Shown here piece after piece: positions 1,625-33,511 of a DNA stretch of 34,862 bases; positions within the stretch are counted from its first letter, which is position 1, and each line of letters starts with the position of its first letter. The stretch covers positions 1 through 34,862 of the forward strand of contig RDEW01000013.1 of assembly GCA_011109175.1 (NCBI GenBank), written 5' to 3'. Both the position numbers and the translations under genes were made by a program. The notes beneath the pieces were generated by a model. That model searched no databases. It worked only from the letters and a program-made list of their open reading frames with translations, and was not told the DNA's origin. This stretch comes from Dicyema japonicum. Lineage: Eukaryota; Animalia; Dicyemida.

Positions 1625-3675
1625 ATATATGGAACGACACACAAAAAACCGTACGTGGTGTTAAGGCCTATTATTGGTTGGAGTATAAAACTCACCAGTG
1701 CAATCGAGAGAATGTTAAAGGTTTACTAAAATAAGGAAAATTTGCTGGTACAGTAAAGTCTCTCGAATTCGCCAATTTCAGAGATCGGCAAATTTGGCGG
1801 ATTCGTCCATCCATTAATAATGTAAATCAAAAAAAAGTTATTTATAAGCAAAGAAATCAGTAAGTTTTGATTTGTTTCTTTTTAGAGTTCGTATCATTGA
1901 AGATCCAAGCTTTTCGACATTAAAGAATTCCTGATTTTATAATTCTTTTAATTTATTTAAGGCTAGAAAAGCCTCGTTAATAGTCGCACCTTTCTGACTT
2001 TCTTCAAGGGTGAATAATATTGCATCTTTTAAGTTTAATTTTTTTATGCAAAATAGGAATTTATCCGAGCTTCAATTTTCTGAATAATATTAAAAAATTT
2101 AACAGAATTGAGAATGCATTTGTACGATTTGATGTTTTACTATCCCTTGCTTCCTTGAAAATCAATGATCCTTCGTTTCGATGCAAATGTTTTGGATTTC
2201 TTAGTAATAATTTCATCGTTTAAAATGGCTCCTTTAACTGCATTATATTTTTTGGAAAAAATTTCTGAAATTATTTTTCGAAGGTAATTCAACATTCGAT
2301 TTAATAGACTTTAAAGTGGCAATTTTTTCTTTGTTTTTTAATCGTGTACAGTTACGTTTCATGAAAACAACAATAAACAACGACAACGTGTTAATAAATT
2401 ATTTAAAAAAATNTAAAAGGACAATTTTGAGACATATTTGTTGACTACGTTTGTTTCAGCAAATATAACTTTTCTACGAGACTTTATAAGATCCAGATTA
2501 TCTCCAAGTTATGATATTATTCATGATAGAAGATACCTCGACAATATTAACATTATGACTTGTGACTACAACGAAGAGTTTTCGAATGTCGTTCGCCATC
2601 CTTCCGGGCTCTTTTGCCACAATAGTAATGACCAACTGTGTGCTGTATTTAACCGTGAAATATCTAAAGACTACTCTGTTGAATATTGGTACTCCAACGG
2701 AGCTTTTCTTTCGAAGTTATAATTGAAGTTCCAACTCATGCTCTAGGATACAAAACTACCACCAAGAATACCAAAATATAGGACTTGATAGTTGGCACAA
2801 CTCCCCTAAGAAACACTCTACATCATCCCGGAAAATGGCTTATTCTGAAGTATTAAACAGAGTTTATTTTAGTGTTGCAACGAGGATTACCTAAATTTAT
2901 GGAACGACACACAAAAAACCGTACGTGGTGTTAAGGCCTATTATTGGTTGGAGTATAAAACTCACCAGTGCAATCGAGAGAATGTTAAAGGTTTACTAAA
3001 ATAAGGAAAATTTGCTGGTACAGTAAAGTCTCTCGAATTCGCCAATTTCAGGGATCGGCAAATTTGGCGGATTCGTCCATCCATTAATAATGTAAATCAA
3101 AAAAAAGTTATTTATAAGCAAAGAAATCAGTAAGTTTTGATTTGTTTCTTTTTAGAGTTCGTATCATTGAAGATCCAAGCTTTCCGACATTAAAGAATTC
3201 CTGATTTTATAATTCTTTTAATTTATTTAAGTCTAGAAAAGCCACGCTAATAGTCGCACCTTTCTGACTTTCTTCAAGGGTGAATAATATTGCATCTTTT
3301 AAGTTTAATTTTTTTATGCAAAATAGGAATTTATCCGAGCTTCAATTTTCTGAATAATATTAAAAAATTTAACAGAATTGAGAATGCATTTGTACGATTT
3401 GATGTTTTACTATCCCTTGCTTCCTTTAAAATCAATGATCCCTCGTTTCGATGCAAATGTTTTGACTTTCTTAGTAATAATTTCATCGTTTAAAATGGCT
3501 CCTTTAACTGCATTATATTTTTTGGAAAAAATTTCTGAAATTATTTTTCGAAGGTATTTCGATTTAATAGACTTTAAAGTGGCAATTTTTTGTTTGTTTT
3601 TTAATCGTGTACAATTACGTTTCATGAAAACAACAATAAACAATGACAACGTGTTAATAAATTATTTAAAAAAAT
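1144..3675 (+). repeat. Direct tandem duplication of about 1.27 kb (1144-2412 and 2414-3675) joined at a single N; probably an unmerged haplotype overlap
   Basis: Copies are offset by 1270 nt and differ by roughly 15-20 substitutions plus a 7-nt indel. The N at 2413 sits exactly at the junction. Confidence 0.9.
1751..2412 (-). mobile_element. pogo/Tigger-family element, first copy, truncated at the contig join
   Basis: TA followed by left TIR cagtaaagtctctcgaattcgccaatt at 1751. Near-identical to 3021-3675; no right TIR before the N. Confidence 0.75.
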
Positions 3676-5010: not shown

Positions 5011-5739
5011 AAATACTAAAACTCGAAGAAATAAATAAGTATCGAATGCTCCAATGTCTGGGTCTTAACCTGCCTTAAATTGAAAGAACTTTCCTTGAGT
5101 AGGGGAACAAGAGAGTTATTTGTTAACTACGAAATCTCTATTGTTCTAGTAGCAACATTATCTGAAAACTAAAATAATTCGCGTAGCGCCATGTGGTGCT
5201 ACGTGGATAGTTTGTCAAAATTATTTTCTTTCCTTCCGATGGCGTCTTACTGAGAAGGCGCCTAATGCCTGGCCGGCATCAAGAGGATAAAACAATTTTT
5301 CCCGGAGACAACGTCGTTAACTGGTGACAAGTTCTGGAGTGCTGGAACGAGTCAGGATCGGAGTTATTTAGTCTGGTTACCTTGGTCTTTGGAAATAATT
5401 TTAATTTTTTTAATTTTAGACTATAAATTTCTTAATTTTAATTTTTTTGAATGAATTATAATTACATCCACTGGGTTATGAGCAAGATTCCTTGCACTGC
5501 AATTCTCCTTGAATGGCAGTATATTTACTTAAATAACAAATCTTTATTAAGCTTCAAAAGTGTTATAAATTAGTAAGCAGCCTTCGTGAATGAGCCCATT
5601 TTTTGATACAATTTGTGTGGGAATAACTTAATCAGCCATCATTAATATATATTAAGCACGTGTCTAAGCTAGAAAATTTAAAAATTTAGACACTGAAAAA
5701 ATTTAACTAGTTTGTCAGCCCCAAGTGGTGAAACATGTG

Positions 5740-18070: not shown

Positions 18071-18399
18071 GAAAGAATCAGGTCTGCTAGTGTGGTAGTT
18101 CTTGTGAAAAGTAGTGTATCATTCATATCTTATGGAACGAGTCCAGCCTCTCTATTTCCTATTTTGAAGTAGCCTAGTTCCCAACGTTGTATAGTGAAAA
18201 GCGAATCTACGATACAGGAAACTCTCGGGAGGAACACCGAAAAAAAAATGAGGAGCTGCTTAAGGAGGCTCGAATTACCAGACGGTTCCACTCTCTTTTA
18301 TTTTATTTTGCGGGTGATTCTTATTTTTTAAATAAAATTAAATAAATAGCAGAATAGGCTTTCTAAGCAAATTGTATAGCAGTATATTTAGTTTGATGA

Positions 18400-18960
18400 T
18401 AATAACTTTTCGTTTAAGTTATAAATTCCTAATTTTATGCATAGACGCATTTACCAAGGTTTTTCTATGTATGACATCCTCACTCTCTCCAAGAAGCGAA
18501 CCAAGTTTTTTTTACATACCGCCTCTTCCAATCGAGTGTTAGTCATTCTTCTTATTTCCGTTAAATCTGTTTTGTCTTTTCTTACAGTAAGAAACCATTT
18601 CCCAAGTATATCCGGTGCTTTTTCTAGTACATGTTCCAAGAGCGCTCTGTTTCTGAAATTTAGTTGACGTTGTCTGCATAGATTAATTCTTTTTTTCCCC
18701 TTGCTATAGCGGTCTGAGTTCCTTCATAGCTGCTTCCAATTATATCATGGACAGTAGGGGAGAGTCGTCTTGAGGAACGCCTGTTTTTGTGTTAATTCAT
18801 TATATGGGACCGAAATTTTTTTTATTTACCCCCGGTCTCTTCAAGTTAAAGAAACTGGTGATAGCAAGAACGTGGCCGGACATCTTGTAAAAAAAGCCTT
18901 TGTTTGACAAGGATAACCTTCTTGATTGAAGACAGATATGTTCTTTTAAAGTTTTTGTCA
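18400..18960 (-). mobile_element. RTE-like LINE RT fragment, inverted relative to 17100-18070
   Basis: TGVPQDDSPLL…LEAAMKELR; EKAPDILGKWFLTVRKDKTD. Confidence 0.7.
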
Positions 18961-19185
18961 CATAAAAGGTATTTTTACTGTAGGGTATTATTAAAATAAA
19001 AAAAGGGTGTATCCATTCAATGAAGCTATTTTTTCGGTGTGGGCAATTGTCAGCTGATTATAAAAAGACGGTCATATATTACAGTGATACGCTGTTATGT
19101 GCAGTGTACTGCATCATTTGTTAACTAGTGCATTTAGCACACATGCATAAATTAATGTAAGTGTGGGTTATTGCTATGAAAAGGT

Positions 19186-19370
19186 AGATGGTTGATCCTG
19201 CCAATAGTAATAAGCTTATTTTACAGATAAGCCTTTCATGAGCAAGTGCAACTTCATGCTCTCTAATGAACGAGACCGCTGACGGCTCATTAAATCAGAC
19301 ATAACATACTAGTTTTTGTCAAACTACGGAAATTGCTGTTATAAATTTAGAACTAATACACATGTAAAGC
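19186..19370 (+). rRNA. 18S rRNA: 5' fragment of 18S rRNA gene (degenerate, probably pseudogene)
   Basis: tggttgatcctgcca…gataagcc…ggctcattaaatcag…tagaactaatacacatg follows the 18S 5' end; similarity stops at about 19370. Confidence 0.85.
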
Positions 19371-19529
19371 TTATTAATTCTGGTCTTATTGGTCTCTTGT
19401 TATTTAATATTAAATGATTTGGTTTATAAAATATTAATTCTAATAAAAATATAATTTTATTTATATTTACTGGATAACCTAAAAAGTAAATAAAATTTAA
19501 AACTTAAAATTAAACGAACGACAATTTAC

Positions 19530-20010
19530 ATGTTTAGTGTACGACAACATTTACACAAACGAACTGGAAAATTTGGAATTATTTGGTAATAAACTTATAG
19601 TAATCAAAGGCTCGCTGCCACTAATTATGGAAAAATAAAGAAGAATGACTACTGCAAATTAGACATAGTTGAAAACTGGTTAAGATCATGATTAACATAC
19701 AGTTATGAATTGTTAGCACACATGGAAGGATTGAACCAATATAGCAGAATATCGTTGTATTTTTCGGGAAAACTATTTATTGGAATCGTTAGAATTCATT
19801 TCAAACAGATTTCGCTGTTAATCGGTAAATCATTAAGTAATAATAACAGAGGATATTATGAATTTGATTAAATCGTTCAGACGAAAAAAGACAAAATCTA
19901 AAAAAAAGTCACAATTATGTTCAGAAATTCGTTATATTGACTTTGATATAGAAGATCTTCCCAATATAGTATTATATTATTTAATATTTAGTCAATTTCA
20001 GGTTGTTCTG
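19530..20010 (+). CDS. REC8: Meiotic cohesin kleisin REC8, N-terminal Rad21/Rec8 domain; 5' part only, cut by the N at 20011
   Basis: Exons 19530-19585, 19610-19678, 19703-19824, 19850-19968, 19992-20010; GT-AG introns of 24, 24, 25 and 23 nt. Spliced ORF has no stops: MFSVRQHLHKRTGKFGIIWLAATNYGKIKKNDYCKLDIVENCYELLAHMEGLNQYSRISLYFSGKLFIGIVRIHFKQISLLIEDIMNLIKSFRR… This matches the animal REC8 pattern (HTGxFxxIWLAAT; SLYLSAQLQIGVIRV…LVEDI) better than RAD21 (IWLAAHW). Confidence 0.88.
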
Positions 20011-20011
20011 N

Positions 20012-20062
20012 TGGTGTGCATGGTTGATTCTGTTAAACGAAGCATTAATTTTTAAATAACTA
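20012..20062 (+). rRNA. 18S rRNA: Short internal 18S rRNA remnant fused to 28S sequence
   Basis: tggtgtgcatgg and ggttgattctgttaaacgaa resemble the conserved ggtgcatgg and ggttaattccgttaacgaa stretches with the intervening sequence deleted. Confidence 0.4.
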
Positions 20063-21230
20063 AACCCGTACCATGCATCCTCTGGTAAATCAATAAACGA
20101 TGATAAAGGAATTCGGCAAAATAGATCTGTACCTTCGGTAGAAGGAATGGCTATACGGGTTGAGTCTATATTGTTCTATTTCTGTTAATCCAGTTTGATA
20201 TTCCTTGATATAGAAGGGGTAGAACTGGCATTAAAAAGCCGTAGCCTTTGACGGTTTTTACGCAGTGTGATTTCTACCAGTGCATTAATTTTAGCGTGAA
20301 GAGAATCATTTACGCACTGGTAGACGGCGGGAGAAACTATATGATTCTCGTAAGTTGTCCGAGTGCCTCGTAATTTAATTGATGACGCACATAAATGGAT
20401 TAACGAGATTTCCATTGTCCCTATCAGCACTCTAGCGAAATTACAGCCAGAGTAATGGGCCTGCGAAATAAGGGTGAATGACCCTTTTGCGCTTGAACTC
20501 TAGATTGGCATTGTAAGAGGACATTGATATAGTGTTGATGGGAATTGATCTATAGACGACAATTTGAAATCACTCCACAGTCATCTTCTTACTAATTTAT
20601 TAATGCTTTACTATCCGCCAGGAAGGTTATACCGCAAGCCCTAAATGGGTGGTTCAGATCCGAAAACAGTGTCATTTGAGAGTTTAGCTAGGGTGGTAAA
20701 TCTTCAAAACGATAACGAAGGTTCTAAAGGTGCGCTCAGGCGTAATAAAAATCTGGCATGGAGCGAAAATGTAAAAGTTTGCATTATTTGCATGTTCAGT
20801 TCGTATGAAAAACTCGAAAGCGTAACCTATCGATCCTTTTACTTTTAAAAACTTTAAGCTATAGGTCACAGAAAAATAACCACAGGAATACAATTGGCTT
20901 TTGGCGCCCGAGCGTACATAACAAAGGTGCTTTTTGATCTTTCGATGTTGGCTCTTACTATCATTTCAAAGCATAAATCGTAAAGTGTAGGATATTCACC
21001 TACTAACAGGGAACGTGAGTTGAGTTTAAACCATCGTGAGATAGGTTAGTTTTACTCTACTGATTTGGTGTCGTTGCAACAGTAATTCTGCAAATTACGT
21101 GAGGAACTGCAGAGTCAGAAATTTTATTCATGCACTTGACTGAAAAGTCAGTGGTGCGAAGCTATCCTCTTAAAGATAACTGGACGCATCTAAACTAGGA
21201 TCTTGACTGGAAGTAACGACATTGTGCAGT
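20063..21230 (+). rRNA. 28S rRNA: 3' half of 28S rRNA gene, degenerate (pseudogene)
   Basis: Colinear conserved blocks cccgtacc; ggcaaaatagatctgtaccttcgg; tggattaacgagatt; tcgatgttggctctt; acagggaacgtgag; tcgtgagataggttagtttta. The sarcin-ricin loop is mutated (attacgtgaggaact, about 21093-21108). Confidence 0.9.
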
Positions 21231-21828
21231 GCACTACTATAGAAAGAATATGCTTTTATCTTGGTATCGAGGTTTTCCCCAAAAGTATATGTGCTTCAAT
21301 ACATTGGTGGTGTACTCTAATCTTGGTTTAGGCATTCATTTGAGGCATTATTATTGATTATTAAACAGTGCAGTAAAATTAATTTATCAACAGATTTGTG
21401 TCTCTAATTGTCTAGAGTGCGATAGCTAGTGTGTTGGCTGTGTTATTCACACAAGATTTGGTTAGAGAGTATCACCTGTTATAAAACTTATAATAGAGTC
21501 AATACAACATGAAACAATTATCACTTCAAGTTTTGATTTATTATTATTTCAGTTTATGGCTATTTTTCCTGTATTAGTTGCGAAAACATCCAAAATAAGC
21601 TTTAAAATGTTTGATAATTCAAAGATGGGTGTTCCAATGGTTTATAAGATTCTTTGTGCGCCATGATTGGTGGTTACTTAGACGTGTTTTGATTCATCCA
21701 CGACGTTTGCCTTTTTGTTTCCTGAATGGTTTTATTATCCCGCTATTCAGCAGTTTTTAGGCCCTCAAAAGTTCTGGTTTTTATCCACCTAAGTAAGTTT
21801 TGCTGAACCACTCAATAACGCATTTTAT

Positions 21829-26270: not shown

Positions 26271-28661
26271 CTACATCTTCCTCGTCCCCAAGAGCGATCC
26301 GACCTTCTTATGTCTTCTCCACGTCTCGTCGGATATCCTCTCTGCACGGCTGAATGATGTAAATTCCGTTTTGTCAGTGTTTATCTTCAAGAACCATTTT
26401 TGGAAAATGTTAGGAAGATGTTCGTTTATGTACTTGAGAAATTCAGAATCATCCGATACAAAGTCCAGATCGTCTGCGTAAATCAACTCATAATATTGTC
26501 CTTTAATGGATAATCTGAAATCCCTCAGTGCAGCCTCAAGATAAATAATAAATAGAATAGGAGACAACGAATCCCCTTGTGGAACTCCCCGAGTGGTTTT
26601 AAAAAAATTGGAAGCGGTATTTCCGATTTTGACAGCCAGGTGAGTATCTTCTAGGAGCAAGGAAATAATTCTAACATCATCCGTGTCTAGAAATGTATTC
26701 AGAATGTTAATAAGTAGTCCCCTGTGTACAGAGTCGAATGCACGACTCATGTCGATCCCCAGAACTTCTATGCATTTTTTGTATTTCTGACATATAGCGC
26801 CAGACCATCTGTGCGTCCATACTATGTCGGCGGTTGATCTTTTTTCCCTGAAACCGCTTTGTCCAGGCGATAAGAATTTGTCGACTTTCCCTTTGATTCG
26901 ATTTAATACAATGATAGAGAGGGTTTTCCGTAAGACCGATAATAGAATTATTGGTCTTAGACTGTTTGCGGGACCTCTAGGTTTCCCAGGTTTTGGTATT
27001 GGAATTAGCCATCCTCTCCCAATTCCAAGATCGTTTTTGTCTTCAAATGCTTTATTGAGTATGATGGTGATTATTTCACCCAATTCAGTGGGTCCACATT
27101 TTATTAACTCTGCAGGTATATTATCAGGACCAGCCGCTTTCCTGTAGTTTAGTTTTCCTATTGCCTTGATAGTTTCCGCGATAATAATGGGGCAGTTAAG
27201 AGGAGCCGTTGATGTTATTGGAGATTTGTTTTCAATTTCTTGATTGTTAAAGATGTCATAGTAGTGTGAAGAGACTATGTTCGCCTTTTCAATAACATTC
27301 AATACTGATCGTCCATGTTGGTCGTGAATAACAATATTCCCTGGTCGTTTCTTTTTGCTAATAATCCGAATGGCTTTGAACATTTTGGATCCGTTCTTAT
27401 ATTTCTTGATTTCATCGACCTGTTCCTCCACTTCCTTTTTTACTTGATATTTTTGAAGTTTTTTGATTTTTGTTAAAATTGAGTTACGAACTATCCTTAG
27501 CTCTTTTTTTAGACTCGGTATATTTGAATTATTAATTCTAATCCTCAAATTCTTTTGTTCTGAAGATAAGTATGATATTTCTTCGTTGTTATATTTGAAT
27601 TTGTTTTTGTGAGTAGTCCCCAAAACCAACGACGCGGTATTCTTCATTGCAACTCCAACGTCATTCCACAAATCCTGTGCACTATTGTTTGTATTCATCT
27701 TGCTTAATTCCTTTCTGAGTTTTTCGCCATACTCTTTCATCTTTATTTCATTGCTTATTAGAGTTTCTGTATCCAATCTTTCGAATTCCGTTTTTCCATA
27801 TCTTCCAGGTTTGTACAAACTTCCCAAAGAGAACCGAGTGATCACCAATTTGTGATCACTTGATGTTTCAAGCCCATCGTATGATCTCGAGTTTCGTATT
27901 AGGTTTTTGTTCCTTCTTCTGCACAAGATATAATCAATTTGATTATATATTTTAATCAAGTTGCCATTTTTGTCCTTTCGTGAACCAGTCCAGGTAGTTT
28001 TATGTCTTGCTGGGTGTTCAAAAGCAGTGTTCGTAATAAATAAGTTGTAGGATTCGCAGAATTGAACCAATGAGACACCAGAGGAATTTCGACGATTCCG
28101 AGCATGTGATCCAATACAAGTCTCCCCATTCCGTACTTTACCAACTCTGGCATTCCAGTCTCCACCAATAAACGTCAGATATGACGACGAAAGTGAGTCA
28201 TATGTCCCTGTCAAACATGAGTAAAACGCACCAAGTTCTTCAGGATTGGCATCAGCCCGGACAGCGGTCGGAGCATAAACATTGACGATAGAAATAACAG
28301 AGTTGGGCTTTGTTCCAAACTTCAGTTGCATGACTGCAATACGATCCGAGACAGCCCATACGCGTGTCACACGGTCGTAAAGATCCCTGTGAACCGCAAA
28401 TCCAAGACCATAATGTCGGCAGTCAGAGTCCAAAGTGATCATGTAGTAATCATCAAATTTCGTAATAGAATATGCTGTAATCTTTGTCTCTTGAATGCAG
28501 CAAATACTGACACCATGGATAGATAAATCACGTGCGAGTTGATGTTTTTTGGTGATGAACTTCAAGCCTCGAGTGTTGAAAGTACCAAGAGAGAATGGGC
28601 AACGGGTAATTAAGCGCCAAGAAGACATATTTTCAAAGAGGGACGTCACCACCTCAACCAA
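26271..28661 (-). CDS. APE endonuclease-reverse transcriptase polyprotein of the RTE-like LINE (first ATG at 28628)
   Basis: GTFNTRG, CIQETK, NVYAP, GGDWNA, QIDYIL, SDH (APE); QSGFR, DMSRAFD, GVPQGDSLSP, YADD (RT). Confidence 0.9.
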   Translation of the reverse strand: MVEVVTSLFENMSSWRLITRCPFSLGTFNTRGLKFITKKHQLARDLSIHGVSICCIQETKITAYSITKFDDYYMITLDSDCRHYGLGFAVHRDLYDRVTRVWAVSDRIAVMQLKFGTKPNSVISIVNVYAPTAVRADANPEELGAFYSCLTGTYDSLSSSYLTFIGGDWNARVGKVRNGETCIGSHARNRRNSSGVSLVQFCESYNLFITNTAFEHPARHKTTWTGSRKDKNGNLIKIYNQIDYILCRRRNKNLIRNSRSYDGLETSSDHKLVITRFSLGSLYKPGRYGKTEFERLDTETLISNEIKMKEYGEKLRKELSKMNTNNSAQDLWNDVGVAMKNTASLVLGTTHKNKFKYNNEEISYLSSEQKNLRIRINNSNIPSLKKELRIVRNSILTKIKKLQKYQVKKEVEEQVDEIKKYKNGSKMFKAIRIISKKKRPGNIVIHDQHGRSVLNVIEKANIVSSHYYDIFNNQEIENKSPITSTAPLNCPIIIAETIKAIGKLNYRKAAGPDNIPAELIKCGPTELGEIITIILNKAFEDKNDLGIGRGWLIPIPKPGKPRGPANSLRPIILLSVLRKTLSIIVLNRIKGKVDKFLSPGQSGFREKRSTADIVWTHRWSGAICQKYKKCIEVLGIDMSRAFDSVHRGLLINILNTFLDTDDVRIISLLLEDTHLAVKIGNTASNFFKTTRGVPQGDSLSPILFIIYLEAALRDFRLSIKGQYYELIYADDLDFVSDDSEFLKYINEHLPNIFQKWFLKINTDKTEFTSFSRAERISDETWRRHKKVGSLLGTRKM

Positions 28662-33174: not shown

Positions 33175-33511
33175 NNNNNNNNNNNNNNNNNNNNNNNNNN
33201 NNNNNNNNNNNNNNNNNNNNNNNNNNNNNNNNNNNNNNNNNNNNNNNNNNNNNNNNNNNNNNNNNNNNNNNNNNNNNNNNNNNNNNNNNNNNNNNNNNNN
33301 NNNNNNNNNNNNNNNNNNNNNNNNNNNNNNNNNNNNNNNNNNNNNNNNNNNNNNNNNNNNNNNNNNNNNNNNNNNNNNNNNNNNNNNNNNNNNNNNNNNN
33401 NNNNNNNNNNNNNNNNNNNNNNNNNNNNNNNNNNNNNNNNNNNNNNNNNNNNNNNNNNNNNNNNNNNNNNNNNNNNNNNNNNNNNNNNNNNNNNNNNNNN
33501 NNNNNNNNNNN
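33175..33511. other. Assembly gap (337 N)
   Basis: Run of N. Confidence 1.

Follow-up and report, generated by a model that had tools for sequence, protein, structure and literature searches.

The 34,862-nt stretch of Dicyema japonicum DNA analysed here (the window; GenBank assembly GCA_011109175.1, contig RDEW01000013.1, forward strand) carries the 5′ half of an α-kleisin gene between pieces of decayed ribosomal RNA genes (rDNA), and the gene stops at a single N at position 20011. The initial annotation took this gene to be a single live REC8 set in a collapsed rDNA repeat. We propose instead that it is one member, collapsed in the assembly as a repeat, of a divergent kleisin family with several copies, and that this member lies inside a duplicated rDNA relic. 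Taken as a whole, this explanation (a gene cassette in an rDNA relic, copied, gene-converted and now probably a pseudogene) is in our judgement probable, although well short of certain. Most of what the initial annotation observed was right, including four exons, the rDNA flanks and the N; the interpretation as a unique, live REC8 is only partly supported, in view of the copy census and the frame breaks in the paralogs.

The kleisin gene lies on the + strand of the window and begins with an ATG at 19530. Its four stop-free exons (19530–19585, 19610–19678, 19703–19824 and 19850–19968) amount to 122 codons, and the introns that follow them (19586–19609, 19679–19702, 19825–19849 and 19969–19991) are 24, 24, 25 and 23 nt long with GT..AG borders; the first is 96–100% conserved between copies. 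Both the clean reading frame and the four tiny introns described earlier were recovered. Five stop-free exons had been listed, of which four are clean, and the fifth is at most a candidate 10-nt microexon (19992–20001), with 20002–20010 then forming the start of intron 5.

α-Kleisins are cohesin subunits in which N-terminal helices bind SMC3 and a C-terminal winged helix binds SMC1. In a six-frame Pfam scan of the assembly (67,542,437 bases in 377 contigs), the N-terminal domain Rad21_Rec8_N (PF04825) was matched at window positions 19530–19823 with 29.5 bits over model positions 1–75, against a cut-off of 23.1 bits. This match takes in exons 1 and 2. Protein searches were run exon by exon, and exon 3 alone scored 21.8 bits (E 2e-4) against PF04825 and weakly matched the N terminus of yeast Scc1 (4ux3_B) in a search of the PDB. 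Exon 4 alone had no Pfam match, and PDB searches with the exon pieces gave weak matches to Scc1 or RAD21 only. The nearest clusters in two ESM Atlas look-ups were all Rad21_Rec8_N, a resolution at family level only. These matches identify the gene as the 5′ half of a Rad21/Rec8-family kleisin, with an α-kleisin as the predicted product.

PF04825 was matched at eight places in the 67.5-Mb genome, and a DNA search added one further copy (C312). Six copies make up what we call family A: the window, C327, C356, C312, C113 and C79. Identity to the window copy is 99.4% for C327 (over 19044–20010, with six differing positions), 98.7% for C356 (over 19401–20010), 85% for C312 and 80% for both C113 and C79. 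A sister family, B, has two copies (C35:658172 and C352:144939). The two families are collinear and share 41–54% amino-acid identity in the N domain, one middle exon and the last, C-terminal exon (46% for exon 2 and 44% for exon 3 of the window copy). The single REC8 gene implied by the initial annotation is therefore replaced by six copies in family A, two in family B and a canonical RAD21. One of the observations named in advance as damaging to that view, a complete copy elsewhere alongside an untranscribed window copy, was found in its first half, as C327 holds a complete and near-identical copy. For annotation, where the value of the finding mostly lies, the window locus is best treated as a gap left by a collapsed repeat, and it should not be labelled the D. 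japonicum REC8.

The canonical RAD21 is on C13, where the N domain scored 108.5 bits and the C-terminal domain (Rad21_Rec8, PF04824) 28.2 bits, the sole clear PF04824 match in the genome, and its translation resembles a standard RAD21. Family A pieces gave no tblastn match to this RAD21 at E ≤ 0.01. Family A is thus clearly distinct from canonical RAD21. A search with phmmer, using a 94-amino-acid stop-free piece of family B against 1.84 billion representatives, returned no kleisin at E ≤ 1e-3 and two unrelated matches. Some N-terminal motifs are reminiscent of vertebrate REC8. Since families A and B are the only other α-kleisins found in the assembly beside RAD21, a REC8-like meiotic role is our best guess for them. 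The hermaphroditic gonad of dicyemids forms eggs and sperm (PMC6736024), and a meiotic kleisin is therefore expected rather than surprising. Retained meiosis, to which the initial annotation pointed, is not new, as dicyemid sexual reproduction has already been described (PMC6736024). We found no paper that deals with both Dicyema and REC8.

The rDNA on either side of the gene is a genuine, collinear, single-strand and dead unit. On the 5′ side, 18918–19186 (+) is 5′ external transcribed spacer (ETS)-like decayed rDNA, with 78–80% identity over 18918–19185 to the DNA directly 5′ of 18S in two rDNA copies (C57 and C290), so that the relic appears to include ∼270 nt of 5′ETS. The decayed 5′ end of 18S follows at 19187–19377 (+), covering approximately nt 1–186 of the 1647-nt 18S. 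The best 18S copy of the genome, which served as the reference (C332:191434–193080, 1174 bits), matched window 19155–19377 by BLAST with 80.9% identity over 225 nt (E 6.5e-55), and the 18S piece of the window aligned with its nt 3–186. This short piece received no Rfam call at E ≤ 1 and was found by BLAST against the genome's own 18S, in agreement with the 18S 5′ end annotated at 19186–19370. An 18S 5′ piece likewise precedes the kleisin copy at C327.

Downstream of the N, the decayed 3′ half of 28S (large subunit, LSU) rRNA spans 20075–21381 (+). Rfam model RF02543 (eukaryotic LSU) matched 20089–21381 (+) with 553 bits over model positions 1890–3399 of 3401, the single Rfam rRNA match in the whole window, and BLAST detected 28S homology from 20075 onward. 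Identity of this relic is 77% to C135, the best of the long LSU copies, and 88% to a paralogous relic at C327. Its sarcin-ricin loop, at 21094–21107, reads ATTACGTGAGGAAC, two changes from the conserved eukaryotic sequence. The pieces stand in rDNA order on one strand (+), with 5′ETS/18S at 18918–19377 and 28S model positions ∼1880–3399 at 20075–21381; all between 18S nt ∼190 and 28S position ∼1880 is missing from the unit. Therefore, the initial annotation was correct on the 28S 3′ half after the gene, on the rDNA order for the 18S start and then the 28S end, and on the heavy mutation of the rDNA (18S ∼81% and 28S ∼77% identical to the best copies, with a changed sarcin-ricin loop). Beyond the 28S end, 21382–21520 (+) is 3′ETS-like and is still common with the C327 locus (86% over window 21336–21520).

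The single N at 20011, which had been reported and is present, is a scaffold gap that putatively hides ∼1.45–1.64 kb with the remaining gene. The copies at C327 and C356 are gap-free, and in both the gene continues past the point of the window's N. Sequences equivalent to the left and right sides of the gap are 1569 nt apart at C327, 1637 nt at C356 and 1451 nt at C113. The stop codon of C327 lies ∼1.16 kb beyond the position of the N; at this locus, a 28S 3′ half with 88% identity to that of the window comes after the sequence at which the window restarts. At C356, 28S model positions 1456–2388 come after the gene. Since the kleisin-then-28S layout recurs gap-free at both loci, the N most probably stands for ∼1.6 kb with the rest of the gene. 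The earlier suggestion that the remaining gene lies in the gap is thus very probably right, given the 1.57 kb at C327 and 1.64 kb at C356 that separate the matching sequences of the two sides.

The N is a scaffolder join inside a repeat with three ∼99% identical copies, and identity to C327 changes from 99.4% to 88% across it. Both points would fit a scaffolding error, in which the contigs ending at 20010 and starting at 20012 are not adjacent and only the 18S piece adjoins the window kleisin. We consider this quite improbable, because the same left–right order is gap-free at C327 and C356, and the same jump in identity occurs at the gene end in the gap-free C327/C356 pair.

The first DNA after the N (20012–20074, +) had been annotated as a mid-18S remnant. 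Its best local alignment to the genome's own 18S scored 21. Shuffled versions averaged 18.6, and 54 out of 300 reached 21, so the stretch is not significantly 18S-like. The same stretch is common to C327 and C356 (91%) and to C113 (86.5%), where it trails the kleisin copy at a locus without rDNA. In the complete copies it sits in a conserved island ∼0.3–0.47 kb past the stop codon (∼0.4 kb in the comparison with C327). Positions 20012–20074 thus belong to the gene cassette, as its conserved 3′ flank.

The 5′ end of the cassette is marked by an AT-rich block (19381–19529, +), conserved in all six family A copies, which agrees with the AT-rich DNA noted between the 18S piece and the gene. This block is a putative promoter and 5′ untranslated region (5′UTR). 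The ∼130 nt directly 5′ of the ATG (∼19400–19529) are 91–100% identical in all six copies, including those without the 18S fragment. Because this conservation extends to copies lacking 18S, the predicted promoter would move with the gene, and it is likely a part of the gene cassette rather than rDNA-derived. The proposed use of rDNA-derived regulatory sequence is therefore not supported.

The identity profile of the copies suggests how this arrangement arose. Between C327 and C356, identity is 98–100% from ∼130 nt 5′ of the ATG to ∼20 nt past the stop, and 72–92% beyond these limits. Similarly, the window and C327 are 99.4% identical over 19044–20010 and 88% identical over 20012–21019. As a young gene tract lies within old flanks, we infer recent gene conversion of the gene tract. 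The three loci differ in extent: the longest ETS is in the window, C327 is truncated at the position corresponding to 19044, and C356 lacks 18S but has more 28S. This pattern fits an origin of the window, C327 and C356 loci from one ancestral composite with later losses.

In the model that we favour, window 19381–20074 would be the visible part of a ∼2.3-kb cassette, made up of the AT-rich block, the kleisin gene with its ultra-short introns and ∼0.45 kb of 3′ flank, and this cassette would be a member of the dicyemid-specific multi-copy family A. One ancestral cassette would have replaced the central part of an orphan rDNA unit, between 18S nt ∼190 and approximately 28S model position 1456, and copies of the resulting composite would then have reached at least three loci, namely the window, C327 and C356. 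Drift would have brought the rDNA flanks to 72–92% identity, with different pieces lost at each locus, and the gene tract would have been held at 98–100% identity by recent gene conversion. Because the gene tract was near-identical between copies, the assembler would have broken the contig at the window gap: the 3′ part was presumably beyond its resolution, giving a contig end at 20010 and an N in place of ∼1.6 kb. The dispersed duplicates are gene-sized with sharp ends. For the 2.3-kb cassette, we rejected a mobile element with fixed ends, as the copy boundaries differ between pairs, although no search was aimed at terminal repeats or target duplications.

Whether the family encodes working proteins was assessed from the reading frames of the paralogs. 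Family A has a coding history: differences peak at the third codon position, and there is conservation of protein sequence between families A and B. Indeed, between young and old copies, codon position 3 accounted for 33/61, 39/81 and 40/78 of the differences in exons 2–4. All the same, no gap-free family A copy among the paralogs examined has a single unbroken frame that joins the N and C domains, the 3′ half of the window copy being in the gap. The copies at C312, C113 and C79 carry frameshifts in exons 1–4. A G run in a later exon is one base shorter in C327, C356 and C312 than in C113 and C79 (in C327, extract L048:5563–5690). In C113 and C79, the exon with this run is one 68-amino-acid open frame homologous to family B; in C327, C356 and C312, it is split into two frames and a TGA follows four codons on, before the C-terminal exon. 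C356 has an extra one-base deletion in a later exon. Upstream, at C327 and C356, the frame is preserved only if the equivalent of 19992–20001 is joined to the next exon over a 29-nt GT..AG intron; these 10 nt are identical in all copies, and in the gap-free copies reading past them meets a stop.

As the window copy belongs to the C327/C356 conversion group, its hidden half probably carries the same frame break. We therefore think it likelier that the window copy is a truncated form, or a pseudogene that was recently converted, than that it is the sole working REC8. The claim of a live gene is accordingly doubtful, since the closest complete copies have the same frameshift ahead of the C-terminal domain. 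Several points weigh against this assessment. The visible half of the window copy has no defect. Past the lost base of the G run, the frame is still open and 93–97% conserved. An unmodelled intron or frameshifting could rescue the frame, and a GT..AG model with 36- and 37-nt introns keeps it. Conservation is higher in the introns and the upstream block than in exons 2–4, which is odd for a family of pseudogenes. The last exon pair of C327 has no Pfam match to the C-terminal domain and matched the RAD21 C terminus by BLAST with an E of only 0.095. The C-terminal exon of C327 is 48–54% identical to family B and has a short LVL-type motif like that of RAD21.

These points bear on an alternative in which family A consists of working, concertedly evolving meiotic kleisins, the frameshift being bypassed by an unusual intron or ribosomal frameshifting, or being an assembly error. 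In its favour, the conversion tract coincides with the region from promoter to stop, the C-terminal exon is open and conserved past the frameshift, differences peak at the third codon position, and introns and upstream block are strongly conserved. We nevertheless find it rather unlikely: the one-base loss is the same at three loci that were assembled separately, the frame of C356 is broken a second time, C312, C113 and C79 have breaks of their own, and the 36-nt intron that would rescue the frame is GC-rich, unlike the AT-rich 23–25-nt introns. The broadest form of the idea would be an expanded REC8-like family (A and B together, at least eight copies) of promoter-plus-gene cassettes that move about the genome and are kept similar by gene conversion, with the SMC3-binding N domain changing fastest, introns under tighter constraint and the frameshift bypassed in the mRNA, that provides several working meiotic or germline cohesins. 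In that form we regard it as unlikely. If it were true, an animal of ∼30 cells would have several working, specialised meiotic or germline cohesins. An active family would also mean that a reduced parasite is multiplying, rather than losing, a core meiotic chromosome protein, and its members could serve as markers for the dicyemid sexual stage.

A single live REC8 in a collapsed rDNA repeat, perhaps with rDNA-derived regulation, is in our view very improbable. The frame of the window copy is clean over its 122 codons, the rDNA flanks are genuine, and dicyemids make gametes and should need a meiotic kleisin (PMC6736024). However, family A has at least six copies and family B another two, conservation of the upstream block extends to loci lacking the 18S fragment, and the frameshift is common to the nearest complete copies. 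The better candidate for an intact gene of this kind is the C352 copy of family B, in which we saw no frame break; its partner at C35:658k lacks one base in exon 4. The family B pair (C35:654500–660500 and C352:141000–147500, − strand) is 98.5% identical, with the identity confined to a gene-sized 1.8-kb tract, and one of them has one more 51-nt tandem unit, coding for a 17-amino-acid repeat, than the other.

Our reading of the window gene as a divergent member of a converted kleisin family can be compared with known systems. Like REC8/RAD21 α-kleisins, the Dicyema family has the same N domain above the Pfam cut-off and coexists with a separate canonical RAD21, and its complete paralogs follow the same overall plan: after the N domain comes a long middle part that varies, and a short last exon at the C terminus carries a winged-helix-like motif. 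The family differs in being very divergent and in having a C-terminal domain that Pfam does not detect. Extra lineage-specific kleisins are known from Caenorhabditis elegans (REC-8 with COH-3/COH-4; PMC4174578), vertebrates (RAD21L; PMC10085773) and Fusarium (rad21 paralogs; PMC6591460). The likeness lies in the presence, next to RAD21, of two or more divergent kleisin paralogs, some of them in pairs of near-identical duplicates. In contrast to these, most Dicyema copies have frame breaks, and the copies are dispersed as gene-sized cassettes.

Orphan or degraded rDNA units outside the array have been described in human (PMC5381670) and in filamentous fungi (PMC5555474). They share with the Dicyema relic decayed collinear 18S/28S pieces distant from the working array, mutated core motifs and many scattered relics, and they differ in that the middle of the Dicyema unit is replaced by a protein-coding cassette and the composite is copied to at least three loci. 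The sharply bounded 98–100% tract within 72–92% flanks resembles concerted evolution by gene conversion; in Dicyema it is deduced from the identity profile, in which no donor or direction can be named.

The introns of family A merit attention in their own right. When young and old copies were compared, the 23–25-nt introns, the upstream block and exon 1 were 84–100% identical, and exons 2–4 only 65–85%. AT-biased mutation was rejected as the cause of the intron conservation, as the excess of exon change was found at A/T and G/C sites alike. The ultra-short introns thus appear to be under tighter constraint than the coding sequence. Introns that outconserve exons between paralogs deserve a genome-wide look. 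The assembly is published as 67.5 Mb in 377 scaffolds with a mean intron of 38 bp and 49% repeats (PMC6736024).

Scraps of rDNA are frequent throughout the genome, with 76 small subunit (SSU) and 198 LSU first-look candidates, and they are scattered across it, moving along with duplicated segments. A unit in canonical 18S-5.8S-28S order begins at C35:461754. The exact eukaryotic sarcin-ricin loop, AGTACGAGAGGAAC, had no match in the whole assembly, despite the 198 LSU-like candidates. Working rDNA thus seems to be missing from the assembly, so that there is no such copy for comparison. The published D. japonicum pipeline discarded contigs covered by octopus reads (PMC6736024), a filter that would perhaps remove conserved working rDNA. 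Matches to window 20012–21500 include many dispersed 28S fragments with differing starts and a common end near window 21259; these resemble 5′-truncated copies, or the end may merely mark the end of conservation. The long intron of C312 (extract L050, ∼5170–5530) holds an insert of ∼436 nt that includes a short piece from the 5′ region of 28S in opposite orientation.

Elsewhere in the window, further scaffold joins are present as single Ns at 2413, 24992 and 29309 and as 337 Ns at 33175–33511. The other single-N joins may hide sizeable sequence, as at 20011. An upstream element common to the window and C79 was set aside as a frequent interspersed repeat: this repeat, of ∼420 bp, lies at window 18374–18790 and has at least 326 first-look candidates genome-wide at ∼72–77% identity. 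Finally, a 796-amino-acid open frame at 26271–28661 (−) that encodes a reverse transcriptase (RVT_1, 106.8 bits) as well as an AP-endonuclease domain represents a non-LTR retrotransposon.

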